Source: Marsupella aquatica | Lineage: Eukaryota; Plantae; Marchantiophyta | Length of the DNA stretch: 64,000 bases | NCBI GenBank assembly: GCA_973895155.1 | Contig: OZ316899.1 | Span: 2,625,455-2,689,454, forward strand | Direction of reading: 5' to 3' | Program-made: the position numbers and the translations under genes | Shown here: piece after piece, positions 26,434 to 56,003 of the stretch | How positions within the stretch are numbered: position 1 is the first letter of the stretch | Layout: each line of letters starts with the position of its first letter | The notes under the pieces: model-generated | Told to the model about the DNA's origin: nothing | Seen by the model: the letters and a program-made list of their open reading frames with translations, nothing else | The model's database searches: none

Positions 26434-26958
26434 ATGTCGTTTTTTCTAGACTGCCACACCATATGTAGACCCCTCATACGGGTGGGTACATGGATGTATT
26501 TTGTGGTGGTTTGGCTGGTTGGTTTGGTAATCCGACAATTTGTACCCCCACCTGGAAAAATCATTGTCAACCTTGAATCTGTTTTACAGTATTGTAGGGA
26601 AAATGAGGAGGAGGTTTACTTTTCGGCAGATGAGTGTGAAGCCGGGTGTGAAGAGGATGATGAGGAATGTAGTAGTTTGCTACATGTTTTGCCATATGAT
26701 TTAGTAGTCACAAATGTATGGCCTAGGGTTCTTTCCATGTCATCAGCACAGGACATTTGCCAATATCGACTCATTAGTACCCAATGGAGGGACTTGGTAG
26801 CCATGTCCCCACCATGGAAGGCATTGAAACCACTACTTGCAGGCACAGATCGTAGACCACCATGGCATGATCTTGGGTTAGACTTAGATGACTTAATGTA
26901 CCTGCCTGAGTACCTGAGGGTTGACTATCATCGAGCACAGGAGTGGTATTTGTACTGA
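26434..26958 (+). CDS. F-box-like protein (CACTA-1 cargo)
   Basis: Open 174-aa frame; LPYDLVVTNVWPRVL..ICQYRLISTQWRDLV fits the F-box pattern; homologous copy in CACTA-3. Confidence 0.6.
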   Translation: MSFFLDCHTICRPLIRVGTWMYFVVVWLVGLVIRQFVPPPGKIIVNLESVLQYCRENEEEVYFSADECEAGCEEDDEECSSLLHVLPYDLVVTNVWPRVLSMSSAQDICQYRLISTQWRDLVAMSPPWKALKPLLAGTDRRPPWHDLGLDLDDLMYLPEYLRVDYHRAQEWYLY

Positions 26959-27303: not shown

Positions 27304-29946
27304 ATGACAAAGATAAAATGTCCTTGCTACATTTGCAACTGTAGGGGTAATCGTGTGAGTCTAGGGACGGTCAAAAAGCACCTCATTCAGAATTCTCGCC
27401 ACCCATCGCAAAGGTATTGGTGGGGAGAGGACTGTGACTCTTCTGATGATGAGTGGAATGCACGTTGTATGGAGGGGGATGGTGCATTTGAGGGCCCTAT
27501 GGACAATGCAAGATGTGCAGAGGAACTTGCCAATGATATGGATTGTGGCATAGATATCCCTGGGATACTAGAGGACCTGGCAATACCAAGTGAAACTGCT
27601 AATGCCAGTGAACCTGTCCAAGAAACCACTACAGAGGAGCCCACTCTGCAGGAAAGTGAAGATGGTCTCTTCAACATGGATGATCTTCTGGAGGCGGACA
27701 GTTCATCTGGAGAAGCAACACCTCAGATTTGGGACCAACAGGCAGAGGAGAAGATGATGCAAGCATTTGAAGAGGCGTGTGCCCCTTTGTATGAGGGGTC
27801 CACTACTTCCCAATTGTCATTTGTGTTGACATTTCTAAACACATGCCATAATCATGGTTTCACCAACTCTGGAGTTGATGAACTGCTTTTGTTGATGGGG
27901 AAACAGTTGATGCCTGCTAAGAATCTGCTGCCTAAAAACCTGTATGCATGCAAGAAGCTGATCAGTCATGCTGGCTTGGATTATGTCAAAATTCATGCTT
28001 GTGAGATGGATGTGTCCTATTCAGAAAGGAGCATGCTGATTGCGATGAGTGTCCACTGTGCAAAAAGCCTAGGTATAAGCAGGTTGGGCAATCAAAGCAA
28101 CCTGTGAAAGTCCTTCAACATTTCCCCCGACAGGTTGAAATGAATGTATAGGTGCAAGGCTATTTCAGAGTTGATGACATGGCATAAGGACAGTAAAAGC
28201 ACAGATGGAAAGGTCTGGCATGTTGCAGATTCTAGGGCATGGAAGGAGATTGATACAACAATTGATCCAACATTTGAAGCAGAGCCTCGCAATGTACACC
28301 TTGGATTGGCTCTGGATGGTGTGAATCCCTTTGGGGAAAACAACCTCAAGCATTCTACGTGGCCTGTGGTATTGTTGAATTACAATTTGCCCCCTTGGTT
28401 GTCCACCAAGAAGTTCTTCATTATGTTATCTTTGCTGATCCTTGGGCCCGATTCAGTGACTGACCGCAACATTGACATTTACATGGATCCATTGTTGGAG
28501 GAGATTTTGGAGCTCTGGGAGGGAGTTCCATGCTTTGATTCACTTGATAGGCCTGGCCTGAATAAGTGGTTCAATCTGCGGGCCATTCTATCGTGGACAG
28601 TGAATGACTATCCAGCTTTGGGTCTCATATTGGGTCAGGTCACAAAAGGATATCATGGATGCATTGTGTGTGGTCCCAATGTGAGCTGCAGAAGGTCTGC
28701 TGCTCTATCCAAGAATGTATTTCTGGGGAGTAGAAGGTGGTTGGAGGAGAACCATAAGTACCGCTCCCAAAGTTATGCAACAAAATTTGATGGGGAGTGC
28801 GAGCCACGGGGGCCTCCACCAAGGATGACTTGTGAGCAAAAATTAGCCTTTGCTGCTGAGGTGGAAGAGTACTTGAAAACACCTGGGGCCAAACAAGGAA
28901 GCAAGAACTGTCCTTCGAAGCTTCATGGGGTGAAGAGGACACAAGGTCTTGCAAAGCTGCCATACTGGTCGGTGAGTAAAATCACACTTGCATTCACGTT
29001 TCTTACTTAGAGATATTGCAACCAACATTGTACACACATGTCAATTTGCAGTTGGACTGATTTTCTTTTTGTTGTTTGCATGCAGAAACTTCTGATCAAC
29101 CATGTGCTGGATCCCATGCACACAGAGAAGAATATTGCTCAGAATTTGATTCACACGACTTCTGGGAAGAAGGATACCACTGCTGTGCGGAATGATATGG
29201 AGGCTGAAGGCATTCACGAGCAGCTATGGATGAAGCCTCATCCAAACAATAAGAAGGATCACTTTGTGAAGCCCAAGGCACCCTATGTGATGAGCGAACT
29301 AGAGCTGGAGAAGTTTCTGGGCACTTTGAAGAACTTGAAAGTTCCCACAGATTTTGGTAGCTCATTGGCAAAGTGTGTGAGAGCCAGCAATAAGTTGGCT
29401 GGTCTCAAGTCTCATGACTACCATTGCCTGATGCAGCAAATACTTCCCTTGGCATTGAAGGACTTGATGGCAACAGGACCTCGAATGGCTATCATTAGTG
29501 CGTGTTGTGTGTGGCATAAAATTTGCTGTAAGGTCTGGGACCCTAGCACTAAGGATGAACTGATGACGGATGTGGCACATACTTTGTGTGCTCTAGAATG
29601 CATTTTCCAGCTTTGTTTTTTGATGTCATGACACATTTGATGGTGCATATAGTGGAAGAGCTAGATATATGTGGACCTGTATCACAACGGTGGATGTATC
29701 CAATCGAGAGATACCTGACAAACCTAAAGGGTTTTGTAAGAAACAGGGCACGACCAGAGGCATCTATGGCTGAGGGTTATATCCTAGAGGAGGCATTGGG
29801 ATTTCTCATAGAGTATATATGGTTCAGTGCCAAGTAACTCGGCAGCGGGTCTGGGACTCTGAAGAAGAGGCAGGGGTTAAAGGTGTGGTCCTGGAAGGGG
29901 CCTCAAGTAAACTGTCTCTAACTGTTGCTGATCAAGATGTTGCCCA
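27304..29946 (+). pseudogene. CACTA Tnp2/TnpD transposase, 5' part
   Basis: CPCYIC..VKKHL, LGLALDGVNPFG, WPVVLLNYNLPPW, LDPMHTEKNI, LKSHDYHCLMQQ, MYPIERYL, RPEASMAEGY; intron ~28972-29085; cut by the Mutator. Confidence 0.95.
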
Positions 29947-30496
29947 GAGGCTTTTCACGGTGACAGCAAACAGCAAACAGTAGAGCTCATAGCAGCAAAT
30001 GTTTGCACCAAAAAAATCTTCCCTAATCCGACATCTCTCGTAAAATGAGATCAAAACCTCTAAAATCCATCATTTTGAAACACATCGGAATACTAGTGCC
30101 CAGCGCTACAGTCCTGAAACAGTCCAAAATACCCGAACCCTCATTCAAAACATCTATATGCAAAAGTATCCCCAAAAACATATGTATACTAGCGCCCGAC
30201 GCTAGTATACAGACCTCAATAACAGACTTAAAAACAGAGATCAACTAAAGACCATCAGATGCCAATTGATGAAACATTGGGAAAGGGGGAAGTCGTATTC
30301 TAATATCACCCAATTGTAATACATCCCAAGTTAAGATTGTTCGCTTCACAAAGGAAAGTTTAGTCAAAAAACAATGTGGACAGTCCGTCTCACTTTATAA
30401 ACACCCATCAATATTACATGTGTTCACAATAGCGCCAAGCGCTATTTTGTAAAATAGCCAATATCTATATCCCCAAAATATAGTTTTAAAGTCTGG

Positions 30497-33400
30497 CTAG
30501 CCATCAGATTCTGAATCAGTTGAATCTAGTTCTGATTCTTCTTCACTACTTTGTGATCTATCAGTAGACTCAGCTTCGTCGTCTACATACTTGCTCGGGA
30601 CGATGTCATCGACATAGCGATTCTTCATAAACTTTCTATCAGAGCCCCTTTTTAGCCTCAGGCCTTTGCTTTCCCAAGTCAGCATTCTCACAAAATCTGC
30701 TTTTCGAGCCGCCTTTTCTGCATAAGAAGGCAAGACAAACGGCTTCTCCAGGGTTTCTATTGCATTCCTAACGACTTTCCTCCATAGTTGAAAGCGCTTC
30801 CAAAGATTCCATTCAGACCTAGAAAGTTGAATCCGATATCTTTAGTCGGGTCCGGGAAAATGGTGGAATGTTGGAGACACTAACGTCACACTTAAAAAGA
30901 AAAAAAAGACAGGGAAGCTAAAGATCATTACTCAGAAGACTCTTCACTATCCTCAGATTCAGAAGACCCGAGGTTCACCACTTTCTTGGAGGCCCCATCA
31001 TCTTTGGACTGTTGCGTACCATCGCCTCCATCATTGTCCTCGTCAGAATCAAAATTAAGAACAACACGGAGTCTGTCCTGCTTCTTACTCCCCACCTGCC
31101 GGTGCGGAGGCGTGGACGTGGAGGCCTCTTTATTCTCGAGAAGTCCAAAGAAAACTTTTGTGGCAGTGTCGAGAAACTCTTTACGATTTTCAATCCCGAC
31201 TACAAACCTCCCACAATGATCTCCAGCCACAAATGTACTTCCGGCCCCAATAGTCCAGTCCATGACAATATCCCCAGGGAGGGTAATTAATTCTAGAACG
31301 GACTGCATGAAACCCACAGGCAAACGTAAGCTCCGACAAATGCAAGCTCCGGTAGAGGATCATTTTTTGGCACGGGAAAACCAATGAGATTGGTTATTGA
31401 AGGATCCTCTGTATGTGAAAGAGGCCGAAATTTGGGATCCTTAGGGACCCTACCTTTGGACGAAACACGCCCAAAAACATTGAGAGTGAGCGTAAAAATC
31501 TGCACATCGAATAATGTTTTGTTCATAATAAACATCAGATGCTACGTCGAGAATACGGAAACATTTCACGAAGAGGATATTCCACACTAGCGCCTGGCGC
31601 TAGCATCGCCGTCAATCTCCAAAGGAGGACACCAAACAGAAACTTTGGAATAGCGCCAGGCGCTACTATACATACCTGCATATCCGAGCGAGGCCTGTAC
31701 ATTGGAGTGCCCATAACAACATTGTGTGTCGAGATACACTGGAATTTCTGTGAATCTGGACAAGCTGCAATGACCTCGGAAACTTGGTCATAGTCGCCTC
31801 TGTGCAAAATCGCTAACAATCCATCATCTGCTAGGAAAGGATCCATTGTTCTGAAAAAGGCACTTGGAATCATATAATCTTGAAGGTTCCATTTAGGAAC
31901 CTTCCTATCCACAAGTGTTGGTTTCAACCCAGTCGGAAGATATATGAAACCAGCATCAACTCCAAAAGCTCTTTCTTTTCCCCCTCGGACAACCCCTTTT
32001 TCTCGATCCCCAGACTTCACCAGCTCTTTCCCCCAACCTTCAATATTAGAAACCCAGTCCGGCTTTTCTCCCTTGTTAAACAGGGAATCAAAACATTTTG
32101 TAACACTCGACTCCACAAAACAATGTCGAGTACACTTTTGTTTGAAATTCCCCACATCTCTTTGCAATCCAGTAGACGCAACTGAATCTCGGGACGAAGA
32201 TCCGAGCCTATCCTCAAGTGTTCCTCTCTTTTTCTTCTTCTTCATACTTGTCGCGTCCACTGGAACCACTGCCTTTCCACTCTCCCCAGGGGTTCCCTGA
32301 TCTGGTGTATTTTCCGCACCAGTGTTAGCTTCAGAGGCCTGAGGAGTAGCGTCCTCTTTTACATCACCGGTAGCATCCGACTTCCTTCCCCCTGAAAGAC
32401 GGAGAGGCGTTACTCAACGGAACTAGTTCTCATAATAGCGCTCGGCGCTAGTATCAATTGGGGGAAAATACGTCATACAAACAAGAGCGGGAATACTTTA
32501 CTAAATCCTAAGAGGCAAAATTTTTTAAGCGATCGAGTTGATTCACTGGGAGCTGCAGATTCATTCTTGGCCTTCACTCTTGGCTTTCGGCTCCGGTCAA
32601 CATGCACGACGACTGTCTCACATTTCTTCTGCAGTTCAGTTGTCGAAGCGTCCACTTCAATCGCAAGACCCTGCTTCATCTCCGATATGTACCTTGCTGG
32701 GATTTGCAACTTCTGTAACTTCATGAAAGCGTCTTTCTCCACCTCGTGGAAAGGCAGATCCCATTTGTCAGTGTCAAGATACCATGGGCAGTGGAGTCTC
32801 TCCCACTCTGACAAGGCGCGAGGTGGGAACTTTCCCTCAGCTGGGTACATCGAATACAGATCAACAAGGTGGTCACCATCTTTGATAATCACCCACTTTT
32901 GAAATGCACCAGGGTAAGCCTACAAAACCTCAGGAGATCGCAACTCCATCCACATGTAGAAACGGTAAACGTATCGCTTGGCTCGTTTCCGGTTCCGCTC
33001 AGTGTAGTCCTCCTTGTCTGCATACTTTGATGGCCACATTATGTTGAAAAATTTAGCCTTGACAAGGTCTCCAAATGATTTGAATTCTTCGATAATGGAC
33101 TTCATGAGAACATCCAGGGACTCACAACCAGACTTGACAAGATGATCATCTGGCATGCGATCCAAAACCTGCTCGAGCGAGGTGAGGATCAATCCAGTAG
33201 CAATTTCCTCCACTGAATTCCAGATATGCCAGGTATGGCACCATTGTTTTACAGGATCGTCGTTCACACTAGCCGGATGAAAGAACTGTTTCCGAATCTC
33301 CGGAGTGCAATGGGCAACGAGAAGGGTACACCTTAACTTTGGATCGAGATAAGTAACTGCAGTAAACAGACGAGCACGGTCCATAGTGCAAACAACTGTA

Positions 33401-34599
33401 TCGGGCTTTTTTTCTCTTTTGTTCTTCTCTGTGACGGGAAACATTTCGGCACATGTAGCCAAGTAGTCACCAAAATCAGGGTGCAGTAATGGAGTGATCT
33501 TTGTTACTTTGATAGCCCAGTCTTTTGTCGCTTCCTTCATCATAGCTTCATGCCTCTTCTGCGTCTCCTCTTCGGACCACGGAGTCCCCTAGGAGGCTAC
33601 AAAATCCATGTCCACTTTGAACTGGTTTGTGTAAGATTTAATCTTGTTCTCACACAAAATGTAGATGAGCGCGTCTTGTGGCATCTTGTGTGTATACCAA
33701 GAACCCTTTCGAGTCTTCTTTCAAATGGCTTCAAACTTAGCATAACTCGTAGCATCAATGAGGGGTTTGTAGTGCTCTAGGTCACGGGATAAAAGATGAG
33801 AGATTCTGTCGGCATCAAGAATCCAAGATGGCTCGACCACAGCTTGTCCCAACCTACGTCAAAATTTAAATGTAAATTAGCAGCGCCGGGCGCTAGTAAA
33901 ACACCAAAGATAATATCACATCCAAAATCCATCTTGAACTAGTACGTCATATTAAATGAGGTTGTCCTGAGGAATGGCTTACTGGTTGACAGCGTGCATG
34001 GCAGCCTCGAGCTCCACGAGGGAACCTTTATCTCCATTGAAAACAATGCAAGTCACACGAGGGTGGTACTTAATGTTGTCCGGATGCTCTGCTGTCACAA
34101 TCAACCACAAATACAAACGGTGATTCCATCGAAGACACAAAACATCTTGTCCTTCAAAACTCTGAAATCAGGATCAGCGTCACACTCTTCCTCGAACTTG
34201 TCATTCTCGGAAACCCAGATTGGGTCCCAAGAGGCTCTAATCTCATTAGTGCAAATCTGTGGAACCCCATCCGCATTCGTTGGCTGTACGTAAAATGGCA
34301 TGCCCATGCGCGAATTGTATCCAGAAATCCGGAATGACTCCTTCAATTTGTCGAATCCCAAAGGACAAGACATGCTTGGAAATGTAATCGTCCATTGAAA
34401 GTCCAGCAACACCAAAATCAACTCGAGCAACTTCCTCACTCGTGTCCATTCTCCCCCTTCTTGATCGCGCAGTCCGAAGAGTTGAGCCAATGTCTGAATG
34501 TGAATGAGACGCAGCGGACCGAGTCACGCGACGGGTGTACACAGGACCTGAAAAAGAGGACTGTGAGGACTCGGAATGACCGGCATGACTATCTCCCAT
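30497..34599 (-). pseudogene. MULE accessory gene: ParB/Srx-like N-terminus plus beta-class amino-MTase-like C-terminus
   Basis: KMFCVFDG(N)HRL with a 1-nt deletion at ~34115. C-terminal region: DAGFIYLPTGL..VPKWN..PFLADDGLLAILH | intron 31675-31500 | PVGFMQSVLELITLPGDIVMDWTIGAGSTFVAGDHCGRFVVGIE. Several C>T-type stops and frameshifts; exon ends approximate. Confidence 0.72.
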
Positions 34600-34882
34600 C
34601 CTTGTATTACCCCACTGAGAGATGGCGATGGCGTTGAGCAGAACGTCGGACAGTATCATACAACTCTCCCAGAGCCCCTGATCCAATACGGAGTAACAGA
34701 CTTAGGTATAGAATGTCACGCTCGAACAGGCTGCTCCAGGAGAATCACGTCTCTCCCACGAGCGCCAAGCCTAATCAGAAGGTTAAGACATGGAGTCTTG
34801 AGCACATTAGAGTGTTGCTCAACGGTAACACCAACAGATCTGAACACTTGGAAGATTACCATTGGACCAGAAACCGTCTTAT

Positions 34883-34958
34883 GTGACCAGCAATCCTCAA
34901 TGTTATGCGTGACCAGCAATCCTCAAGGTTACGCGTGACTAGCAATCCTCAGTGTTAC
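34883..34958. repeat. 26-bp tandem repeat, 3 copies
   Basis: GTGACCAGCAATCCTCAA(T/G)GTTA(T/C)GC units upstream of the accessory gene. Confidence 0.85.
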
Positions 34959-36579
34959 CGTTAAAATATGACCGTTGATCGTTTTGGCCTTATTGATAGC
35001 GCCAAGCGCTAGCAAAAACAACTCCATATTACCTGATTCAAACTACGTACTAATTTCAATAGCGCCAAGCGCTAACAAATCTCCCACGCATATATATTTT
35101 ACACAATTCAAATGGAATTCATGGATAGATGGACAAAATGGACATTATTTGGACCATTTTATCCGTAAGCGTTATTAGCGCTCGGCGCTATCATAAATTG
35201 CATCCAAATCGATGTTACTCATCACTAGAGAGTAATACAAACTCTTACATATCCACAAATATTTAAGAATCCATCTGGTGTTAGAAGCATAAGTTTGAGC
35301 ATTCCAATGCTAGCGCCGAGCGCTAATATGGAACCTATCACGGTTAAGACCACTCCATCAAAAACTACAAGCATTACGAAGACTTTCAAAAGACATTTGG
35401 TCAAAAGATTTACTCATTCCCGTAAGGCAAAACATCAAAAAACACAAACTGAATAATGAAAAATGCATAAGGGAATGGCTAATAGATTCAAACTCCATTT
35501 AATGGTATCGGCTTTACTTCACAACACTAGAAGAAAACCTGTGTTTTACTACTACAGGCCCTGCAACTACTTTGCCTAAATAACTCATACGTGGTGCCAA
35601 CCACTGTTTTTTTAATGGGTTGTAATAATCTGCATTTTATTACTCTACTTAGAACTATGTTACCTTAATCACTGATTACAACTCTCCTTTTTGCCACTAA
35701 AACTTACATCACTTGAATTAGAGTTGTATATTACACAAATTTGCAAATCACTACAATCCACCGTCCACTACACCGTCGATGTTTACAACTCTATTTTCAA
35801 CTAAGATTTTACCACTGGCGGAAACCACTACAAATACAAATACCACCAATATTTGAATGGTAAAGGTGCTTTTTCAATAAACTCCCAATCAAGTGAATCA
35901 TTTCCAAGTGATCTCAATTACTTGAAATAATGTCATTTGTGAACACACCTATTGTTACTATAAATATCACCAATAGTGGAGTCACAAATGAATTTTGTCA
36001 AAGTAACTTAAAATATTTTAGTGACAAGGACATTTTTACAAACAACTTAAGATTGAGTGGATTATTTGTCACTGTCCAAAAGTCTTTAAATAAAGTCATT
36101 ATTATCACATATTGTACAACTACAAATGTCACTCATATTAGAGTCCAATAAATATCATTTGATGCAACTTTAGACCAAGTGTCACATTCTCCATAGTCCA
36201 AAATCACTCTAAAGAATGTCATTCTCTTCATACATTTTATTAACTCCAAATGCCACTAAGAGTAGAGTGCCAATGCAGGGCCTTGCAAATGACTTGAAAT
36301 GAAGTGGATCATCTTCCATTCTCAGAAATCACTATAAATAATGTCATTCTTTAAATACATTTTGCAACTACAAATGCCACCAGCATTAGAGTGTCAAAAC
36401 AATTTTGACAATTGACTAAAAATTGGGCAGATTATTTTGTGATGTCCAAAACCTCTCCCAATGATGTTATTATCAACAAACATTTTCAGTCAAGATATGC
36501 ATGCCACTCGAATTACAATGGCAAACGAATTATATTTTACAACTTGTACCCAAACCACTATAGAACAGGTGGTTATAGG

Positions 36580-38560
36580 GTTTTGGGCACCTGTCACTTG
36601 AAATACCACCGTGTTTTGAGTTGGGAAAATTATGTGTTTAAACTTGCAATGAAGTGCATTTATATGTACCAGCCCAAACCACTTCACATAAGGTCGTTTC
36701 GGGCCCTCACCTTTTGGCAACTACAAATTACACCCGTATTTGAGTCATGCAACACACATTGGTGCGACCACTTGCTATGAACTAGTGCTAAAAGGAGTGA
36801 ATTGTGTGGACGCATCACATAAGCTCCATATTTGTAATTCCGTAGAGTCTTGGAGTGATTTGGGTGGAGTTCATGATGTTCCATAACTTGTGTGCCTCAA
36901 ATCTCTTCACCTTGGCATTTTATGCGTCACAACCTCATTGTCGTTGCTATAACTAGTTGGCACACATGATGGGGGTGTCCCACGGCTTCACCATGGGGTG
37001 GCTAACACAGAGGAATTGTGATGGCGGCGGGCCCAACCCTCCTCCTTTAATGGTGGCCCTCTGAGAATTGTCGCAAGGTGGATCCACTTCTCATTATCCA
37101 CTGTAAGTTTGTCACTCCCCAAATCACTAAAAACTCTGTTCTTCAAAGCCCTCATTTCTAGCGACTAACACTATCACTCAAGCTGGGGTGATACATCACG
37201 CATCCCTTTGAACAACTTATTGTGAAGTGGTAGTCCTAGGGTGATGGTTGTTCACAAACCACTGCAAATGAGGTGATTTTAGGGTTTAGGGCAAATGCAA
37301 CTTAAGATACCACCGTTATTTGAGTTGAGAAGTTAAATTGGATGTGAACACTTGCAATCAAGTGCATTTGAATGTACCAGCCCAGTTGACTCGAAAAAAG
37401 GTCCTTTTGAGCCCTCACCTTGCAAATACAAATTGCACCAGTATTTGAGTGGTACAACACATATTGGTGGAACGACTTGCCATGAACTAGTGCTAAAAGA
37501 AGTGAATTGTGTGGGTACATCACATAGGCTCCATATTTGTAATTCCGTAGAGTCTTGGAGTGAGTTTTGTGGAGTTCATGATGTTCCATCACTTGTATGC
37601 CTCAAAGTTCTCCACCTTGGCATTTTATGCGTCACAACCTCATTGTCGTTGCTATAACTAGTTGGCACATATGATGGGGATGTCCCACGGCTTCACCATG
37701 GGGGCGCTAACATGGAGGAATTATGATGGGCGCTGGCCCAACACGCCACCTTTCGTTGTGGTGCTCCAAGAATTGCCGCAAGATAGATCCCATTCTGTTA
37801 TGCATTGTAAGTTTGTCACTCCTCAAACCACTCAAAACAATGTTCTTCAAAGCCCTCTTTACCAATGACTCAAACTATCACTGAAGCTTGGGTGGTACAT
37901 CACGGATGACCATTGTACCCAAACCATTACAAATGAGGTGGTATGAGGGTTTAGGGCAAATGCAACTTGAAATACCACCATGTTTTGAGTTGGGAACTAA
38001 ATTGTGTGTAAACACTTGCCATAAGTGCATTCTTATGCAAGTTCTTATGCACTAGCCCAAACCATTACAAATATGGTCCTTTGGAACCCTCACCTTTTTG
38101 GCACTACAAATTGCACCCATATTTTAGTGATGCACAACACAATGGTGCAACCGCTCGCCATGAACTAGTGGTAAAAGGAGTCAATTGTGTGGACGCACTA
38201 CATTAGCTCTATGTTTGTAATTTATAGAGTCTTGGAGTGATCTGTATGAAGTTCGTGATGTTCCATCTCTTGTGTGCCTCAAAGCCCTCCACCTTTGCAT
38301 TTTATGCATCATATATAACTCCATTGCCATTGTTCTAAGTGGTTGGTACACGTGATGGGGGTGTCTCCCCGCTTTACCATGGAGGGGCTAATAGGGAGGA
38401 ATTATTATGGCCGCCGGCCCAACACTCCGGCCCCTTTGGTTGTGGCCCTTCACGAAATGGTACAAGGTACTACATCCATGGCTCTTGGGATTGTCCTCAT
38501 GAACTACTGAAAACCATTGCAAACAATGTTGTTCCAAACCTTCACATGTATGCCACTACT
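36580..38560. repeat. ~680-710-bp tandem unit (about 3 copies)
   Basis: The unit seen in CACTA-1 recurs at ~36808, ~37513 and ~38191; TTTAGGG at 37278-37291 and 37950. Confidence 0.85.
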
Positions 38561-40554
38561 ATTATCACCTATCATTGAGTGATTCAATACATGATAAAAA
38601 TGTTCTAGCTTCCAAATAACTCACAATCATGTAGTGGGTGTAGACCTACTCGGGTGAATACCACTACAAATGACGTAGTACCAGACCGTCACCAAAGTGC
38701 AACAAGAATATCACCAATATTTTAGTGATCCATTACACAATATGTGAAACAACTTGCAGCCAAGTAGTGAGCCTGTGTTAATCAGGCCAATTTAACCACT
38801 TTGAATGTGGTTGGTCCCAACTCCCTTGTTTGTGACACATTACACTTTCTTTGAAACAACTTACAATCAAGTACACACTAGTCTGGATCTTTTTGGGACT
38901 GGCCAAAACCACTTTGGGTGTGGTGTTTCCAAACCATCATACCTGCAGGACTACAAATACCACTAACATTGATGGACTGGCTAAGTGACCAAAGTAGTGC
39001 TTTAAGGAGTGATGCAAAGGGTTGAATGTACCCAAATTGGCAATTCAAGAAAAGTTATTTTTTTCTCAAGTACTATATAAATTAAAAGGTGTTTGCATTC
39101 TCAAGAAATGTTTGGCATTTATTAGGACTCATATGGATCACGTCATTTCTTGTGGATTGAAGGTGAATGACTTGCACTTCTGGACCTAGCTTCACTCCAT
39201 GATTGACAAATTGAGCACTAGATTTAGATAGGATATCTCTGACTTTGCTTCACTCCATGATTGACACTTGGGGAGTATGTGACATATGCAGTATTAGGCA
39301 ATTTTGATTTACGACAACTCCAACATTTGAATCAATCATATCCGCCCAATTTTTGTTGTTGGCAATCCGTGTGTGGGATCGATTGGAACCTGGAAGGGAA
39401 TCACTTTAGACAAGAGGCTTTTGTTCTTGGTCAAACTCAATTAAACTAGATCAGGCTAGAAGCTCTATACCAACTTCATCTTTGAAGCTGTCCTTGTAAA
39501 GCCAAGAAGGACACTACTTTTTATGTGGAGTTCTGACAGGGACTCACATGCTTTGTGAACTGTTGCACTTCTCAATGCGCTGTTGCACTAAGACCAGGAT
39601 GACCATGTTGGCAATATTTCTGTTCAATGATTCAACTTTGGTGACAGGAGGATATTTTTGAGAGACCAAGCCATTGACCTCAATGGTTGCAAGAAGTAGT
39701 TCAGGTACATGAAGCAACATAGGTGGTGTTTAGTTTGCTTGCACAGCATTAGTATACAGGCAATTCAAGTGAAGCTAATCAACTTAAAGTTGTATCATCG
39801 TCTTCTAAACTAGTACTACTATTGCATGTGATGCTTTCATTTTGGAATTCTGCTGTATGAATCTGTAACGTGAACCAGGATGGTTGTCTAAAATTCTTGT
39901 TGCCTGTTCGTAAACTACTTTGTAGAAGACAACTCTACAGAAGAGCAAGCACCTGCAGGGCTTGGCAGTGCTCAAACATGTCAAACAAGTGACACTCATT
40001 TTTTGTGGACTCGAGGCAGAAACTGATGAGGAAGTAGGACTTGCATTTGAGACTCCTAGGGATTGAAGAAACCTATAAATTCCCATGTAGGGAATGGACA
40101 TCACTGTTATAGGATAGTAAGTGTTTTTGGATTCCCACTTTTGGAAATATGTACCAGCCTTGGCATTTTGCTAATTTTGTATCGAATGATGATTCTGGGA
40201 ACATTGTATTGTGTATGAATCTGCATGTGAGTGTATGTATGATATTGCATGTGGTCCTTCTATTATTGTCCATAGATATTTAGGGTTTAGAGTTCTGGAG
40301 CTTTGAGTGAATAACTCAAATTCTAGTGATTTAAAACATCAGATTTCTATTGTCATTCAAGTTTTATAATGAGCGACTCAAAATGCAGCGATTTGAAACA
40401 ACGGAATCTACTCTCATTCAAGTTCTATAACATTTAAATCACCACTACTAAAGTGATCTTGGACAATGGTCATACCACTCCAATTACGGTTGTCTTACAT
40501 ATGATGTTTACAATCACTCATTGCAAAGTTGTAAATTAATCATAAATAACACTC

Positions 40555-41140
40555 GAAGCCTAGTCACATAACAAGTAGTAAAGGACACTCATCCCAAAGT
40601 TGTAAATGTATAACACTTGAAGCCTAGTCACATAACAAGTAGTAAAAAATGCATTGTTATGGTTGCAAATCTATTCATATAATAAGTTATAAAAATTGTA
40701 AACTTATAACCTCAATTATAGTTATATAACAAGTCATAAAAGTATATGAAAGTTGTATAGTTATTACTTCAATTCTAGATTTATACCAAGTACTAAATCA
40801 ATACAACCTCAAATCTAGTTGTATGTCAAGACTTGTAACAAGTACTAAAGTATAGTTACAACCTCACATATAGTTGTATAATAAGTGGTAAAGGTTATAA
40901 TGTTATGGTTTCAATTCCAGTCATAAAACAAGTACCAAAGGTTCAAAAAGATGATTGTTATTATTTGAAATCTAGTCATATAACAAGTCATAAAAGTTTT
41001 ACTGTTACGACTTCAATTTTAGTCATATAATAAGTAATGAAGGTGCTAAACAATGCATCTTTACAACCCCAAATCAAGTCATATAATGTCGTCATACAGT
41101 TTGTATATAGGTACTACTGTAACTTTAGTCATAAGAGAAG
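40555..41140. repeat. ~57-bp degenerate subterminal array (about 10 copies)
   Basis: Recurring TAGTCA(C/T)ATAACAAGT..TAAA near the CACTA-2 right end. Confidence 0.75.
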
Positions 41141-41789
41141 TTCTAAAGGTGCTTCCCATGTTTTTGGAAAAGTTACATTGACCAAGTTGATAGTGGAGTC
41201 ACATGTTACTTTCCAATGTTCCTGGAAAAGGTACATTGACCATGTGACATCTTACCCCAATGTTTTTGGAAACTGCCACATGTCTAGTTATCATTTGTCA
41301 ATAAAAGTCACAATAATAGTTGTTTTGGACAATACCTAAATAACTATTTATTCTTGAGTTGTTTAGGACTGTTAGGCTTGAAACCGACGGTGATGTAAAC
41401 TACTCAAACATTTTGAGTTATTGTCATAAACCACTCTATGCTCAAAGCAACTACTTGTCTAAAGCGACTGACATTAGTGCACTCAAACCTTTTAGTTGTA
41501 AATTGTTTGTTAATACTCTAAAACAAGTTAATCATGTAGTGATAAAATCCCAGTTTCCTTCTAGTGCAAAGTCTTGAAATATTGAGTAAAAACATGAGAG
41601 TAACCTCCCAATAGATTCCGAGACTATCGTGCTGGCAAAAGATTGACTACCATTTCTACCATCACTGCATCAACTGGTCGTGACTGTCAACATTGAACTC
41701 CACCAAATGAGGTTGGTAATCTACTCAGGACTACTAGGTTCTCCAGGATCAAACGGTCCATGCGTTAATCTCCAGGATCAGTTGATCAG

Positions 41790-42227
41790 TTAATCTTCCC
41801 ACCAGCTTGGCTTGTACGTGTCCGAATCATCGTTGGAATCGCTAGAACCAACGCCCCAACGAAACCCACCCCGACTGCAAGAGGAGTCGTCGTTGGACCC
41901 CGACTCGTCGTGGGTCCCTGCATCATTGTTTGTATCCTCGCCTTCACTTGAAGAACTTTTTCCATGTCTAGGTGATGGGTTTGACAAAGATAAGCCCGCC
42001 TTCGACACCCGACATTTCTGCACGACGGGTTGAACTTCTGCTTTAGCCTAAGGAGCACCATCTGGTGCGGATACAACCCGGGTTTTCGCAATTACTTTCC
42101 CCTTTGCTGAGATCGGGACATTCGAATGAGAAGGAGGCTTCACGAGAGACTTCTCCTCAGTGCCCTCTCCATCGCTACCGCTTCAAAATGTAACCTGCGC
42201 CTTCCCCTTAGCTCGTGGTGGAGCCAT
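41790..42227 (-). pseudogene. Ser/acidic ORF in the MULE (third gene or displaced 5' exon)
   Basis: ATG 42227 MAPPRAKGKAQ... stays in frame through two stops (TGA, TAG) into the 41790-42023 ORF. Confidence 0.45.
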
Positions 42228-42874
42228 GGAAACTTAAACAAACGACTCTGAACGATCAAGATTGAACAAAAGTTTCTCGTATGAAACCGGACGCGGGAGC
42301 GCAAAAAATGTTTCTGAGAACAAAGAACTTCAAATGGTGAGAGACAGACTCGCCGACCAGGTTTTGAGGACAGAGGTGAGAACGTTCGGATTTCCGTGGA
42401 CGTCTCAAATGTAATGGTTTCCGATCGTGCAATTGACGTCCGAGATGCGTCGATTGTGAAAACTTAAATGCACACGTGCGTACTTGGACCGAGTCACGGA
42501 TTTTCTGCCCGTTGTTAGAGGTATAACGTACGAGCTTTGATGATAGCGCCGAGCGCTATTATTACGATCTGAGTTTTCCCTGTCCTCCTTGCCATGCGGT
42601 ACTATATTTGGTCGAGAGTCATGCTTCCATTGTCAAGTTGTTCCCCGTTCACAAAAGTAGCGCCCGACGCTATTAAACTCCCCGACAATTAAGCTGGTTC
42701 AATACAGCCGTTGAATAACGACAAAATTCAATTGATTTACATCGTCCAAACCATTAACGTAACTTTCTTTGTCATTATTCAACGTTCGTTTATACTGTCG
42801 TTATTAACCTCGTACATCAAACAAGCCTTAAACCGATTGGGGAAGTGAGACATCGATTATTATCTTCCGCTGAA

Positions 42875-45800
42875 ATGGGACGATCGATCGTAGTGAGACG
42901 CAAGGACACACGGGATGTCATCACGGTTATCGTATCCCCTGAATCTCAGTCAAGGAGAGTTTCGGATGAATACTTGGGGTTGAGATTTGATGTTTCCAAA
43001 GAGTGTATTCTCTCTGTGTCCCTCCTCCCTAAGGATTCAAAGGCAAATACCATCTTCTATGATGTCATTGATGGACTCAGGTTTTGGACGATGTATCCGG
43101 AGAAAGTATACGAGGTCTTTGTTTTGGAAGATTCTAAAGCATCGGAAGATCTATGTCCTGTTCCCGGTGGTGTTGATGTTGTCAATCTGTCTAAAACTTC
43201 GGAAGACGACGGGAAGAATTTGCCCCTTTCCTTTGATGTCCCGAAAAGGATCTCAGTGGATCCCTTGGTGGTGAAGATGGAGGTTCAAGATGTCCCAATT
43301 GTATATCGGCAAAGTGTGATGGATACTATCCTAAAATCGAAGGGACATAGCGAGTTATCTCGTTTCATCAGGGAGAAGGATTTCACGCATCAGATAGTTC
43401 CCAGCCTCCCGATGACATACAATGGGAATGTTGTGTTTGAGTTGCCTCCAGTTGATTGCGTGAATTCGAAAGGGGAACGACTGAAGGACATGGACCGCGG
43501 GAAGGATTGCTATTACTGGACGCGCATTGTCAAGACATCTTTGAATGTTTTACCAAAGAAGATGTGGGATTTTGGAAAGGTTCAGTGTACCGGTTCTCTT
43601 GAATGTCGGAACAATTCTTGCCAATTCTGAAGAGACAAAAAGACTAGGAACAACCAAGTCTGGGCGAGATCACCAAAACTATCAGGAACCTTTCGAGTTG
43701 GAGAACTCATACCGCAAGGTGGTATTGTCTGTCACCACTATTCTGAACCTCCGATGTGTACAAGATCGTGTCCGGCCATGATGTTCTATATGTATCCTTC
43801 GGCCAAAGTGGATTCAACTCATTTGGCGTATATGTCCTGGCTGGCTGTGCACATGGAATTTCACAACCATCCCAGTCGTCAAGTGTGGTCGAGAGAGGCT
43901 GAAAAGGTTGCTAAGACTCACCTCGCAAAGGAGTTCTAGGCTAATCCACGAGCTACGCCTGCTGGGATAAAGAATGCGGCTACAGACTCTCTAACCAATG
44001 CCCTCTGTGAGGAATCCATGGAGGAAATGTCTTCGGAAGAGGAGAAGGAGATCTGGGAGTCCCTCATGGTTGTTGCTACCCCACAAAAGTTTGCTTTTGT
44101 TTTGCGAAGTGTGAGACAAGACCAGAAAGGCAAAGGTGAGCTTGAATATTTGGTGCGGATGCAAAAGTGTGTGAGACTTCCCTTTCTTCATAGGTATTTG
44201 CTTCCAGGCCAAGGATGTCGAGACGAAAGTGCTCACATCTTCAAGATGACTGTGAAAGGCGAAGGATCTGGGATCGACCTTCTCCGGAAAATGCAGACCG
44301 GTGGTTCATTAGAAGGGTCATGGGTGAGTTTCGACGTCATGCATAGAATTACATCGGACTGGCTAACTTTTAGTGTTCATGTATATGATCATCACTATCG
44401 GGCGCTTTGTACAATTTTCACTTGTGAATTAAAGGCTGAAGACACCAAGTCCTTAGAGAGAGTGTGGCGATTGATGATAGAAGTTGCGAGTGAAAATGGC
44501 CTAGAGAACATTCAAATTCGAGGATTCATGGCGGACAATGCCCAGGCTGGATGGAATGCGGTGCAAAATGTTTTCTTCAATGGGGTACCTGATCCTTACC
44601 GAGAGCGATCAGATGCGTTTCATTTTTATCAGTCATTTCGTCAGCATTCTCGCAAAGGTGTTCCAGAAGGAAAACTCGAAGAACACAAGAAGATGTGGGA
44701 CGGTCTTCGTAACGCAAAAACATTTTTGGACGCATATCATATGTCAAGAGAGATCGACGATTGGTGGAGAGCTGGAAATTGCCATCAGGGGAAGCTTTGA
44801 ATGTTGCAAGGGTGGCTCTCATGGTGGGTCGTCCGTTGGAGACAATGGGGAAACTTCATTAGGCTGGTAAGGATTTTCTTAGATTCATGATAGTCCGTTA
44901 CCATTGATTTGTAATAGCGCTCGACGCTAATATGGAAAATGATTATTCTGACTCCAATTCCTTGTTACAGTATAGTAGCGCCAAGCGCTAGTATGAACAA
45001 GCACACTTTTGCAACTATGAACATGGCAGTGATGTAAGAGATTTGATAGCGCCAGGCGCTACTTATATATTAGAGAGTCCATATTGCATAAATACAAACT
45101 ACATTTGTCGTGAATTACTGTAGTTACTAAATTTTGTTTCCGATGACAGAGCAAGAGTGCCGAGGAGGCAGGTATGATTCCGAATTGTACTGGTTCGGAA
45201 TCGGTCCATGCAGGCATGAAGGCGTGGCAAATGAAGAAGCGGGTTGGCCTCATGGAGGGGTGCAAAACTGACCAAAACCGAGCCATATGTCAGATAGCAG
45301 CATATACTGCATACGGTCGAGGATTACATTGGGGAACTGGACCCACTATCTTTGAGCTGGCTTTTTTATCTGACGACATGACAGGGTCTCCACGTCTATT
45401 TGAAGAAGCAACCAATCTCCTTCTTTCCAACGCAGCTGAATTTGATTTGGAAAGAACTGTTCCATTGAATGGAGACTTCATAACTCGATCGGTGAAGCGA
45501 AAAGGTAATGCAAGTGGGAATGTCTCGGCACAAGACTCTCACAGGCATGATACTATCCTTGTGACTTCACCAAATACAAGGGGTTTGAAGAGAAGAAACC
45601 TCCATTCCACAGACTTTGAGAAGATGTCTTCCACACCTTCTGCTGGTGGAAGTGGCGTTGTTAATTTGTCTCAAACTGAGAGTGAAGATTCTGAGGAGGT
45701 CGTCATCCTTGAGACACCCTCACGTCGGACGACAAGATCTTCTGTTCCTCCCGTAGGACATCAAGCTGAGGCCGCGCCTGAGGAATCTCTTCTCCCAATG

Positions 45801-46670
45801 GAAACTGACATAGCTCCAGGTCTCTGGCAGCTCCGACAAACTGCAAAACGCGGTGCTGGTCCAGCTTGTAATGGGACCCTCGGTTGGAGAGGAAGCCGCG
45901 ATGAATGTCAAAATCGAGTAAAGAAGGTTGGGTTTCCAAATCCAAAAGGAGTTGTTGCAATATCTGTAAGAGGATGTAGACTTTTTAGAGGAGAACCTCA
46001 TCCGGACCAGATATGGTTTTGCCCAAACAACAAATGTCACAAAAGTCGGCCAAGAAGAGGTGTTTCAAACATTCCCAATATACCATCCGTTCTTCCCATT
46101 GCGAGAGGGACCAATCTCCAGGAGGGCGAGATCCAATTCTTGAGAGAACAAGGTCTACTTGGTACAGGAGAGGTAAGGGAAGGTCAGGAGCCATCCCCGT
46201 CTGAGTTACGCATCGATGTGAATTTGTTCCAAGAGAGGATCAATTTAGCGGACCCAATTTTCAAATGTGGCTCTAGGAATGGAAGGAAGTGCTTGCAGAG
46301 AGTGAATCTAACTCAAACACATTACAAGAAGATCGAAGCATCCGAAACAGAAGTAATGAGGCTCGTATGCGAGAGAGATGTCACGAGTGGGAATGCGTGG
46401 GGGAAGCAGTATTGTATCAGAACACATGAACATGAGAGGAATGCTGCCTCTTATTGGGTGCAGATTTGTTGTTTCCCTTGCTGTTCATGTGAGGATTTCT
46501 ATCGGAGGCACATTTATAGGAAACCTTACATGCCTTGCAAACATCTATATTGGGTATTCAGGACAGTGTTAAAGTTGAGTCTTCACGATTCGACACTATC
46601 TAGTCAACCAGTTCTGACATTGGGCGAAGTCCGTTACCTGCTTGATCGACAAAATGGAACGGACATGTAG
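42875..46670 (+). pseudogene. MULE transposase with GCM-like N-terminus and C-terminal SWIM finger
   Basis: DCYYWT..CTGSLEC..CPA..HNHP; WVSFDVMHR; FMADNAQAGWNAV; DAFHFYQS; intron 44867-45148; SWIM CSCEDF..PCKHLYWV. One frameshift (~43626) and two stops (43937, 44798). Confidence 0.88.
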
Positions 46671-46974
46671 TCAATTTGGTGCCGTTCAACAGCTTTAAGT
46701 GGCATTTGTCTTTTCTAACGGGCAGAAGATGTACCCGTTTCTTATCTAGAAAAATGTGTTGTCTGTTGGTAGCGCCTGGCGCTAGCCAAAGTTTGAAACA
46801 CATAGCAAATATATTGACTATTAAATAAAGCGTGTCTTCTTATAATGACCTTTATATTGCCCGTTTATTATCATTGAATGGTGGGCCCCATTATGTTAGC
46901 ATTTCAGAGAGCGCTTATATGGTTGTTATTTTTTAACATCGAGCCATTTTTTTGAACTTTGAATAACCTATAAA

Positions 46975-47095
46975 ACTCATACAAGTAAATAGTTTCTCGT
47001 ATGAGTAAACAGATTTTTTGCTATGAGTCATTGAAAGCCTCATATGAGTAAATTTTTGCTCGTACGAGCAAAAAATTTGCTCGTAACAGCAAATC
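46975..47095. repeat. MULE right subterminal ~20-bp motif array, including a perfect 22-bp palindrome (47053-47074)
   Basis: CTC(A/G)TA(T/C)GAG(T/C)AAA-like units; TTTTTGCTCGTACGAGCAAAAA. Confidence 0.75.
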
Positions 47096-47128
47096 TATTT
47101 ACTATTTGCTGTCACGGTGGTTATACCC

Positions 47129-48234
47129 TGTTGCCCACACCTATTACCTAGAGAACCATGTACAGGTTGCACCATGGCTCAGGTACATGATAACTACATC
47201 ATTTTGTTTATGGCTGTCTCAGTGTTCAGTAATGTAGTTCTAAATGCATTTTCACAATATGACAGTATTTCTTTTATGATATCTAACATTGTTCTTTGCT
47301 TGCTTGGAAGGTTGTATGAGTCAGAAGAGGAGAAGCAAAGGATAGAAAGGGAAGATGTTGTAAGACAGAATAATGCAGAACAACAACAAGGCAGAGTCAA
47401 GCAATGGCCTGTCCTACTGAATTTGCTTCCATTCCTTTTGGAGTGTGGTTGAGGGATACAATACACAAGGCTAACCTGGATGACAATGAGGACAAGTCAT
47501 TGTTGACTGCAATTTCTTTTCCACCAAGCCAGAAGGCTTTGTCTTACAATTCAATGAAGGCTTTTGGGAACCATTACAGAGTGATGCGCTGCAAAGATAG
47601 GAATGGTGAATGGTGTGAGATGTCCACTCTTAGGGACACTGATTGTCAAGGATATGCTACATTCAATTCAGGGGTGGCCACAACTTTCCATGAGCAGATC
47701 AGGGAAGAAACTAGGGTGAATTTGGCCAAGCTTACATATGTGGGGGTTCTAACACAGATACTTGTGCTTGACTATGAACCTCTGTTACATTCTGAACCAG
47801 CCATAATCTTGAAGGCAAAGTGGGTGTGGTCTAAGTGGGGAGAGGAGAGGTCTAATCCATCAATGAAACATGATGAGACTGGCCTATGGCTTGCTAATTT
47901 TAATATGCCTTATCCCTCAGCTGAGAAATTAGATTATGTCTTGCCCAGTCAGATTGAGCAGGTTTTCTTCTACCCAAACACAGCCAGGGCCTCTTGGAGA
48001 CATGTTCTCCATAAGGAAGGGAGGTCTCGACAAGTTGTTGAGGGTATAAATGACCTTGAGTTTAATGATCTTGTGGATCGTCATGAGGCTGTTGAGGCTG
48101 AGCTTGTTGCAGCAGCTAACAGACGAGTGTCCTTGGATGAAGGAGAAATTCTAGTTTTTCAGGAGATGGTAGTGTTGACAAGAAGTGATAGTGATGATGT
48201 CTGGGAAGACGAAGAAGATTCAGATGAAGAGTGA
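47129..48234 (+). pseudogene. CACTA-1 Tnp2, 3' part
   Basis: Resumes after the TSD; KAFGNHYRV, YVGVLTQILVLDY, ILKAKWV, YVLPSQIEQVFF, WRHVL. Confidence 0.9.
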
Positions 48235-55406: not shown

Positions 55407-56003
55407 ACCTGAATAATGTATATGCATAGTGCACCTGATGTGGATACCTTGGAGATTGCAGACATTCCAATTTTGAGAAGAAGGACCTTTGTAGGAGAGG
55501 ATGCTTAGGCAACAAGTACCCTAAGTTCATTACTTGTTCCTGGGTACATGCCTTCAAAAACTCCCCTTAAGCCTTCTAGGAACTATTTTAACTCTGCAAT
55601 CATTTTGATCACGACTTACATGACACTGCTTAAATTAAATCAGGACTTCTCATTATGAGCATATAAGTTACAAGGCTATTTAATTTGCGAGAATGCGTAG
55701 AAGTGTACCAACATTTTGAATTCTCATTGAATGTCTGCCCATTTACAACATCTGTATGTGGCATCACAAAACAATTGCACTTGTCACCTTCAATATTGTG
55801 AAGGCACATATTCAACCTATGAGGTGCATCCTTGCAGGTGTCTAGTACGTTTGTCCCAATATTTCTCCCGTTTGGAATCGGAGCAGAGACTCACCAAACG
55901 ACAGGACTGGACCAAGTTATAAACGCAGCATTTTAGGGGCCCTTCGATTATCAGGTGAACACATTATCTTCCGGTCTGTAGTGATTAGGTGGGGTGTGTG
56001 TAC

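Follow-up and report, generated by a model that had tools for sequence, protein, structure and literature searches.

The 64-kb window analysed here (64,000 nucleotides of contig OZ316899.1 of the liverwort Marsupella aquatica) contains a Mutator-like element (MULE), a DNA transposon whose non-coding DNA carries 17 copies of a palindrome of the form TAGCGC-N3-GCGCTA. The element is bracketed by a perfect 9-bp target-site duplication (TSD), TGTTGCCCA, and ends in imperfect terminal inverted repeats (TIRs), CACGGTGACAGCAAA and CACCGTGACAGCAAA, as is expected of the Mutator superfamily (TSD of 9-11 bp, TIRs). Its insertion splits the tnp2 transposase gene of a CACTA-type transposon; homology to a second CACTA copy ends at 29870 and restarts at 47503. 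The MULE carries two divergently transcribed genes, consisting of an accessory gene on the reverse strand and a transposase gene on the forward strand. Coding segments were defined as the stretches conserved at the protein level in a translated comparison with liverwort relatives. No conserved gene beyond these two was found in the element by this comparison, and non-coding DNA accounts for 39% of the element's own DNA. The window copy is dead, with two in-frame stops in the transposase gene (TGA at 43628-43630 and TAG at 43937-43939) and a 1-bp deletion in the accessory gene.

A search of the window with TAGCGCNNNGCGCTA, allowing at most one mismatch, returned 17 matches, all of which lie between 30094 and 46784 (Table 1). 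The other 47 kb contain none, and matches with two mismatches do not occur in the window. Dinucleotide-preserving shuffles give an expectation of 0.01 copies, with a largest value of 1. When the 34 half-sites are symmetrised, the full motif becomes a 23-bp palindrome, WTRN-TAGCGCY-N-RGCGCTA-NYAW. Its core positions are kept in 33-34 of the 34 half-sites, of which 24 have C and 10 have T at the inner position; a strong bias is also evident at the flank positions -11, -10 and -9. Four copies are subterminal, seven intronic, and six are situated in the divergent spacer. None of the 17 falls in a conserved coding segment, and the probability that all of them would lie in non-coding DNA by chance is 1.4e-7. 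The nested CACTA-type element that interrupts the MULE (35525-41566) is likewise free of copies, and the 40-bp flanks of the 17 palindromes are mutually unrelated. A single core CpG of 34 is mutated, to T at position 30097, where every covering contig from four sequencing runs has C; the mutation is thus private to the window copy. An earlier note, made from the letters of the window alone, had placed the 17 copies exactly, with none elsewhere in the window, and had described their split among the three compartments, their absence from exons and from the nested element, and the one mutated core CpG. Our analysis reproduced all of these, and the split and the absence from exons hold against coding segments defined by conservation.

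Table 1. Features of the MULE in the window (coordinates of the window) and palindrome variants of related elements.
Feature	Position	Strand	Description
MULE-like DNA transposon	29947-47128		17,182 bp including the nested CACTA-type element; own DNA 11,140 bp
Left TSD	29938-29946		TGTTGCCCA
Right TSD	47129-47137		TGTTGCCCA
Palindrome 1	30094-30108		TAGTGCCCAGCGCTA; subterminal, 3' of accessory gene; holds the mutated core CpG
Palindrome 2	30190-30204		subterminal
Palindrome 3	30430-30444		subterminal
Palindrome 4	31588-31602		accessory-gene intron A6/A7
Palindrome 5	31651-31665		accessory-gene intron A6/A7
Palindrome 6	32436-32450		accessory-gene intron A5/A6
Palindrome 7	33881-33895		accessory-gene intron A1/A3
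Palindrome 8	34997-35011		divergent spacer
Palindrome 9	35060-35074		divergent spacer
Palindrome 10	35176-35190		divergent spacer
Palindrome 11	35311-35325		divergent spacer
Palindrome 12	42544-42558		divergent spacer, transposase side
Palindrome 13	42658-42672		divergent spacer, transposase side
Palindrome 14	44915-44929		transposase intron T1/T2
Palindrome 15	44976-44990		transposase intron T1/T2
Palindrome 16	45047-45061		transposase intron T1/T2
Palindrome 17	46770-46784		subterminal, 3' of transposase gene
Accessory gene, broken in window copy	30530-34686	-	putative ParB/Srx-like region, predicted helical middle, methyltransferase-like C-terminus
S-adenosylmethionine (SAM)-binding motif I	31159-31323	-	beta-class N6A/N4C DNA methyltransferase fold (Pfam PF01555)
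ParB/Srx-like segment	33985-34358	-	LKESF..GY..., FDG-NHRL; 1-bp deletion; alignment A2
MULE-type transposase pseudogene	42764-46652	+	coding 42764-44878 and 45147-46652; SWIM-like C-terminus
Left terminal region	29947-30010		AGCAAA-type repeats (29965, 29972, 29994), unlike the internal palindrome
Right terminal region	47010-47128		TTGCT-N6-AGCAA units (47056, 47077) and TTTGCT repeats
Nested CACTA-type element	35525-41566		ends CACTAGAAG... and ...CTTCTAGTG; 3-bp TSD CAA; outside the palindrome system
Variant, Calypogeia fissa	L001, L003, L004, L005, L011		(ATA)TTGY-TAGCGAG/CTCGCTA-RCAA(TAT); 11-24 copies each
Variant, metagenome	L006		ATTA-CTAACGAYRTCGTTAG-TAAT; 20 copies; L006-type site TAACGAYRTCGTTA
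Variant, metagenome	L007		TGC-TAGCGCC/GGCGCTA-GCG; 4 copies
Variant, metagenome	L008		GGC-TAACGG-NN-CCGTTA-GCC; 17 copies
Variant, metagenome, transposase contig	L010		GAGGC-TAGCGG-NN-CCGCTA-GCCTC; 9 copies
Variant, Riccia sorocarpa	L009		CCAGCG-N5-CGCTGG; 12 copies

The palindromes occupy the interior of the element. The first lies 148 bp inside the left end and the last ends 344 bp inside the right end. In the terminal 150-340 bp the palindrome is absent and AGCAAA/TTTGCT units occur instead, including two TTGCT-N6-AGCAA palindromes, in line with the earlier distinction between the internal palindrome and the terminal motif.

Relatives of the element comprise five loci of Calypogeia fissa, one of Riccia sorocarpa, and five metagenome contigs. 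The DNA around the homologues was examined by a blind scan for recurrent palindromes, and every relative locus examined contains 4-24 copies of a palindrome variant of its own (Table 1; the C. fissa counts tolerate up to two mismatches). The variants are 20-28 bp long and have the core TARCG-N4/5-CGYTA in common (CAGCG in Riccia). A 7 x 11 matrix of motifs by loci is almost purely diagonal, with almost no cross-occurrence between lineages, and the ~10-kb flanks of the relatives contain no palindromes. The compartments occupied by the sites are alike in every lineage, namely the T1/A1 spacer, the introns A1/A3, A5/A6 and A6/A7-8, the intron T1/T2 preceding the last large transposase exon, and both 3' flanks. 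Of a total of 170 sites, counted over the window and ten loci, not one falls in a conserved coding segment; three Riccia sites scored as lying in T2 are located in the gap between two high-scoring segment pairs (11929-12662). The C. fissa copies are 66-88% identical where blastn aligns them and mostly unalignable in between, with the 22-28-bp palindrome kept; a search for TIRs of the C. fissa elements detected none. Spacers between sites resemble one another no more than shuffled sequence does, and the sites form no tandem arrays. As the spacers are unrelated, the sites are selected islands and not duplications.

Trivial origins of the palindromes were rejected. Chance would give 0.01 copies against the 17 in the window, and shuffling predicts 0.00 copies against 20 observed in each of L004 and L006. 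One duplicated block, or a set of decayed tandem repeats, is incompatible with unrelated flanks and spacers and with the absence of arrays detected by TRF. The flanks of the sites are inverted and not direct, both in the window and in the relatives, which rejects a micro-element with TSDs of its own, a possibility that the earlier note had raised.

A metagenome scan for the paired motif TAGCGC-N3-GCGCTA gave 28 hits, 27 of which are unrelated repeats, many of them of high GC content. The only relative among them, L037 (soil metagenome Ga0066793, 1.3-kb contig, 205-1113), contains fragments homologous to the last exons of both genes. It has three palindromes in which the centre of the window motif, TAGCGCY-N-RGCGCTA, is joined to flanks of the C. 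fissa type, ATATTGC...GCAATAT. The outer arms TTGCT...AGCAA of two terminal units of the window element, TTGCTCGTACGAGCAA and TTGCTCGTAACAGCAA (47056-47092), are also shared with the internal palindrome of C. fissa, a likeness that may reflect coincidence or common origin. In Riccia, the divergent spacer (L009:8577-9854) additionally features a tandem array with an exact 106-bp period and a second, GC-rich palindrome, GCCGGCGG-N3-CCGCCGGC. This is the sole tandem array that we observed, and it occurs in addition to the dispersed CCAGCG-N5-CGCTGG sites.

The palindromes differ internally in how well their CpGs are preserved. At the metagenome locus L006, 13 of 20 sites have lost the central CpG to TpG/CpA, whereas the half-site CpGs are intact in 40 of 40. 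The window offers a parallel, with T at the inner position of 10 of 34 half-sites against a changed core CpG in only one of 34. Both contrasts act as an internal control and point to constraint on the core. In the older C. fissa copies, most departures from the consensus resemble CpG-to-TpG/CpA transitions (judged by eye, untallied), and C>T and G>A dominate the differences among copies in the four sequencing runs (best-supported 40 differences). The contigs of these runs are fragmented, represent many diverged copies and yield no evidence on splicing; the family is high-copy in two organisms. The ratio of observed to expected CpG is 0.91 in the non-coding and 0.71 in the coding DNA of the MULE, compared with 0.32 in the nested CACTA-type element and 0.42 in the rest of the window. 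The contrast is weaker in C. fissa, where the elements range from 0.66 to 0.78 and their flanks from 0.30 to 0.66. Such a contrast fits a lineage that is unmethylated during its active life.

The transposase is 42-46% identical to the homologues P0045-P0051 and 34% identical to a SWIM-domain protein of Riccia sorocarpa, and a SWIM-like CxC...CxH motif is visible in the open reading frame (ORF) 45174-46670. Pfam yielded no match for the transposase (window ORFs, P0053, P0047, and the 690-amino-acid ORF of L010), while its ten best language-model neighbours with a family assignment all belong to MULE/SWIM families.

The accessory protein has a length of ~1000 residues, and nine segments of its gene (30530-34358, reverse strand) are conserved with Calypogeia, Riccia and metagenome loci. 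Its C-terminal part matches the Pfam family N6_N4_Mtase (PF01555) over model positions 166-220 of 221, with 32.9 bits against a cut-off of 26.7 (E 8.4e-08, ORF 30928-31323). This is the sole Pfam family in the element, exon pieces and homologues having been scanned, and the homologues P0006, P0015 and P0018 score lower on it than the window ORF. NCBIfam gives weak PRK13699 and CcrM matches on the same SAM-motif stretch. A full-length PF01555 match is absent, and neither Pfam nor a PDB profile search yields a match for the N-terminal two thirds. The block in which motif IV is expected reads D.GFI.[LF]P[TNHL][GSN] in 12 of 12 aligned homologues, and LPTG in the window copy, instead of (D/N/S)PP(Y/F/W); this placement was read by eye from alignment A1 and not by profile alignment. 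If the placement is right, the methyltransferase-like domain is apparently catalytically dead. The earlier note's methyltransferase label therefore stands in part: the SAM-binding motif I is present but the catalytic (D/N/S)PP(Y/F) motif is missing, so that the name probably does not mean methylation.

The N-terminal region of the accessory protein keeps LKESF..GY and (V/F)xDGNHRL blocks across homologues (alignment A2) that look ParB/Srx-like. The frameshift of the window copy lies within the conserved FDG-NHRL block at ~34123-34125, where most contigs of the four runs have one extra base. Language-model neighbours of this region fall in the DUF3723, ParB_N and DUF6551 cluster sets. The ParB/Srx assignment is based on the DGNHR motif together with these neighbours, and is a tentative one of unconfirmed fold. 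The N-terminal region is followed by a conserved middle region of ~300 residues (alignment A3), which is predicted to be all-helical (pTM, the predicted template modelling score, 0.58). A language-model search with the 207-amino-acid exon was uninformative. An exhaustive HMMER search with the 244-amino-acid exon over 1.84 billion representatives retrieved 39 clusters only, and the named ones are all from Calypogeia fissa. No ATPase family that could represent a ParA-type partner was found in any ORF scanned, and the Pfam scans of exon pieces and homologues revealed no VANC-type domain in the accessory protein.

Taken as a set, the lineage-specific variants in the same compartments are, as judged from sequence, the signature of co-evolving cis sites. 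We favour, with moderate confidence, the reading that the palindromes are selected cis sites of this liverwort MULE family, bound by a dimeric element-encoded protein for self-recognition. In its support, all loci reached via the accessory gene have palindromes, and L009, reached via the transposase, has the same divergent gene pair, accessory gene included. A homodimeric protein, most probably the accessory protein, would bind the palindromes and thereby recognise same-lineage copies over their full extent, also in trans and with dead copies included. Since the window copy is dead, any recognition of this copy must act in trans. By analogy with VANC and ParB, the outcome might be anti-silencing or self-marking, or a ParB-like clamp might spread. 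As the putative binder we favour the accessory protein, because a different motif is found at the termini, the necessary place of transposase action, and because in algae unrelated transposases are accompanied by ParB-domain accessory genes that have inverted-repeat arrays next to them. Part of the self-recognition idea advanced in the earlier note is borne out, in that lineage variants in the same compartments fit a VANC-like system. Its analogy to parS is weaker in logic: ParB reads parS through its helix-turn-helix (HTH) domain and not through the ParB/Srx N-domain, and we found no HTH in the accessory protein, although a missing structural match is weak evidence.

A wider version of this reading is possible, and we hold it only tentatively. 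In it, a ParB/Srx-like, catalytically dead methyltransferase protein would load as a dimer at the palindromes and coat or mark the whole element. The TARCG core with its lineage-specific centre and flanks would then serve each lineage as a private, evolvable address code. The same principle might hold wherever Mutator, Sola or Plavaka elements carry ParB-domain genes, from algae to land plants, as a eukaryotic re-use of parS/ParB logic for epigenetic self-recognition.

Several observations weigh against binding by an element-encoded dimer and against the accessory protein as the binder. The ParB assignment proposed in the earlier note found no match in Pfam, NCBIfam or PDB profiles, and the AlphaFold model of the region is poor (pLDDT, the predicted local distance difference test, 40). 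The model of the middle domain has no meaningful match in the PDB (Foldseek; VIA-align wide) or among AlphaFold database clusters, and no DNA-binding domain was recognised in the accessory protein. We found no relative that lacks one of the two genes, each having both or being too short or truncated to judge, and their co-occurrence cannot tell which gene the palindromes follow. The CpG transitions in the older C. fissa palindromes indicate that inserted copies appear methylated and decaying, and, as far as the sequence can tell, the palindromes confer no lasting protection from methylation. The contrast in CpG ratio is absent in Riccia and is confounded by insertion age. Half-site spacing changes between N4 and N5 from one lineage to another, which is awkward for a rigid dimer. 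Finally, the first flank position is arm-symmetric in 55 of 80 C. fissa sites compared with 32.5 expected, and the fourth in 13 of 17 window sites compared with 8.0 expected. A plain homodimer model does not predict such co-variation of the arms at degenerate flanks. Because orthologous sites in related copies share ancestry, the symmetry statistic is inflated; the co-variation could be explained by two binding specificities, local site-group origin, a structural role, or symmetrisation of the palindromes. In L004 (1061-12966), T-type sites (ttgT...Acaa) mainly occupy the intron and 3' flank of the transposase gene and the surroundings of the accessory gene's 3' part, and C-type sites (ttgC...Gcaa) occur in the spacer array and, within the accessory gene, in one intron at 9.3-9.7 kb.

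The alternative that survives best, which we nevertheless regard as unlikely, is that the palindromes are extra sites for the MULE transposase itself. They would then contribute to transpososome assembly or to sequence-specific activation of its own copies, and the accessory protein would have a different role. Wherever a palindrome locus includes the relevant DNA, it also has a transposase gene, the transposase intron of L010 holds six of that contig's nine palindromes, and MULE-derived FAR1/FHY3 proteins are known to read CG-containing sites. In a 2026 preprint (10.64898/2026.08.24.746577), the AtMu1 transposase alone is reported to activate cognate copies in a sequence-specific manner. However, the terminal 150-340 bp, which form the required transposase site, are devoid of the palindrome and carry another repeated motif. 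Furthermore, the algal inverted-repeat arrays and ParB-type genes go with transposases as unrelated as those of Plavaka and Sola1, and Pfam scans recognised no DNA-binding domain in the liverwort transposase.

An improbable explanation is that structure matters and not sequence: the sites would adopt cruciform or hairpin forms as DNA, or hairpins as RNA within introns and untranslated regions, and a structure-specific factor might read them or a symmetrising process maintain them. The near-invariance of the sequence over 10-24 sites within a lineage, and the TARCG core common to different lineages, argue against it, although the arms co-vary at degenerate positions within lineages and every difference between lineages appears symmetrically in the two arms. 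A stem of 9-11 bp with a 4-nt loop is possible for the C. fissa version, whereas the window version permits only a 6-7-bp stem with a loop of 1-3 nt. Some sites are subterminal, beyond the conserved coding segments of either gene, and the symmetry statistic is inflated by the non-independence of orthologous sites described above.

We consider it still less probable that the sites are targets of an active element-encoded methyltransferase which methylates adenine or N4-cytosine within the palindrome, as proposed for algal ParB-methyltransferase proteins. Motif I of Pfam N6_N4_Mtase, above the gathering threshold, the weak CcrM and PRK13699 matches, and the proposal that a protein of Ectocarpus Sola1 binds and modifies its own transposon (PMC12477816) speak for such an activity. 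They are countered by [LF]-P-[TNHL]-[GSN] at the motif IV position in all 12 homologues (placement by eye), by the confinement of the match to model positions 166-220 of 221, and by an N-terminal half that matches no family or solved structure. Very little remains for the suggestion that host transcription-factor sites or independently mobile micro-palindromes accumulated by happenstance: unrelated metagenome repeats also contain loose TAGCGC-N3-GCGCTA pairs, and the core is therefore found elsewhere in nature, but no sites occur in 47 kb of neighbouring transposable elements, in the nested CACTA-type element or in the ~10-kb flanks of relatives, the inverted flanks at each site leave no TSD, the variants track element lineage, and the extended motif appears in only one of the 28 metagenome hits, L037, which encodes fragments of both element genes.

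Palindromes read as cis sites of a self-recognition protein find their closest counterpart in VANC of the Arabidopsis VANDAL MULEs, for which binding and hypomethylation have been demonstrated (Hosaka et al. 2017, PMC5735166; Sasaki et al. 2023, PMC10398659). The family-specific motif to which VANC21 binds is located in the non-coding DNA of introns, intergenic regions and termini (PMC5735166). In both systems, a MULE has an accessory gene beside the transposase gene, and a short family-specific motif is concentrated in non-coding DNA (introns, intergenic and terminal) and rare elsewhere. Motifs also differ between related families in both, and protein and sites appear to co-evolve. In contrast to the liverwort sites, which are 20-28-bp palindromes in unrelated spacers, VANC motifs are 9 bp long, non-palindromic, in one orientation and generated as tandem repeats. 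The liverwort accessory protein also differs in its methyltransferase-like C-terminus and in the absence of a VANC-type domain by Pfam, and binding and hypomethylation, shown for VANC, are only inferred for the liverwort family.

A second set of counterparts is found in algae. ParB-domain accessory genes with adjacent inverted-repeat arrays are present in red-algal Plavaka elements, as Bostrychia/Chondrus PAG2/PAG3, and homologues have been reported in Chondrus Mutator elements (10.1101/2025.02.11.637652). A gene combining ParB and methyltransferase is found in Ectocarpus Sola1-1_Ec32 (PMC12477816). As in the liverwort family, the accessory gene is large and runs on the opposite strand from the transposase gene, a ParB-like part (putative in the liverwort protein) is combined with a DNA-modifying domain, and inverted repeats lie nearby. 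The algal systems differ in belonging to Sola1 and Plavaka/EnSpm elements of brown and red algae with tandem arrays by the gene, whereas the liverwort family is a land-plant MULE with sites scattered over all introns, spacer and flanks. The conserved core with lineage variants and the lost catalytic motif also set the liverwort family apart, a comparison made by descriptions and not by sequence.

Bacterial ParB-parS systems and the ParB-methyltransferase fusions of phages and plasmids (Iyer et al., PMC4738411) offer a more distant parallel. ParB-parS likewise involves palindromic sites of similar length, several per replicon, and the prokaryotic fusions share the order of a ParB-like part followed by a beta-class methyltransferase, with the ParB fold unconfirmed in the liverwort protein. 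Unlike these systems, the liverwort element yielded no HTH, ParA partner or sequence similarity to parS, and its 10-24 sites are spread over ~11 kb instead of being few and near an origin. The subterminal repeats of Ac/Ds, En/Spm and MuDR are also repeated short cis motifs inside a DNA transposon. Those repeats stay within a few hundred bp of the ends and correspond to the transposase footprint, whereas the liverwort palindromes fill introns and the central spacer, and the termini carry another motif.

That eukaryotic DNA transposons carry genes combining ParB-like and methyltransferase parts, whose products are proposed to bind and modify the element itself, is already on record for brown, red and green algae (PMC12477816; 10.1101/2025.02.11.637652; see also PMC4738411). 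Searching the literature for liverwort, MULE and ParB together returned nothing. What is new here is the occurrence in a land-plant MULE, the long dispersed palindromes with a shared core and lineage variants at conserved positions, and the apparent loss of the catalytic motif. The mechanism of transposon self-recognition and escape from silencing is known for very few systems, of which VANC in Arabidopsis is the clearest, and for the algal ParB-methyltransferase transposon genes self-binding is only a suggestion. The liverwort family provides a testable cis code, with long palindromes, an invariant core and at least seven lineage variants at conserved positions in sequenced, tractable liverworts. 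If the binder is the dead methyltransferase-like protein, a DNA-modifying fold would have been turned into a sequence reader, which could become a programmable tool for targeting loci.

Further features surround the palindrome system. The nested CACTA-type element, which sits in the divergent spacer of the MULE, is non-autonomous and contains ~700-bp internal repeats at 36544-38459. An upstream copy of it, 85% identical, lies at 13475-15938 (alternatively 13475-16291). Between the nested element and the start of the transposase gene, the GC-rich stretch 41786-42228 (reverse strand) has an ATG at 42228 followed by GT, together with a 101-amino-acid ORF; it shows no conservation in relatives. 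At the metagenome locus L006, a DUF659 (hAT-associated) ORF (L006:6035-6946, reverse strand) is arranged tail-to-tail with the accessory gene, just past the last palindrome. This hAT-type ORF was set aside as evidence, as it lies outside the palindrome range and is uninformative either way. Four other contigs (L023, L026, L017 and L039; ENA, the European Nucleotide Archive, ERZ1023xxx; GC ~0.40) contain several copies each of unrelated repeats, CTAAGCTGCC-TAGCGCTAAGCGCTA-AGCTG, with no homology to the MULE genes. The CACTA transposase gene into which the MULE inserted (Pfam Transposase_21/tnp2) occupies 28144-29870 and 47503-48234 of the window, and a second, diverged CACTA transposase is found at ~59000-63300. 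A BRCT-tandem ORF (55989-56852) and an F-box ORF (26434-26958), both identified by Pfam, lie within or adjoining CACTA-type DNA.

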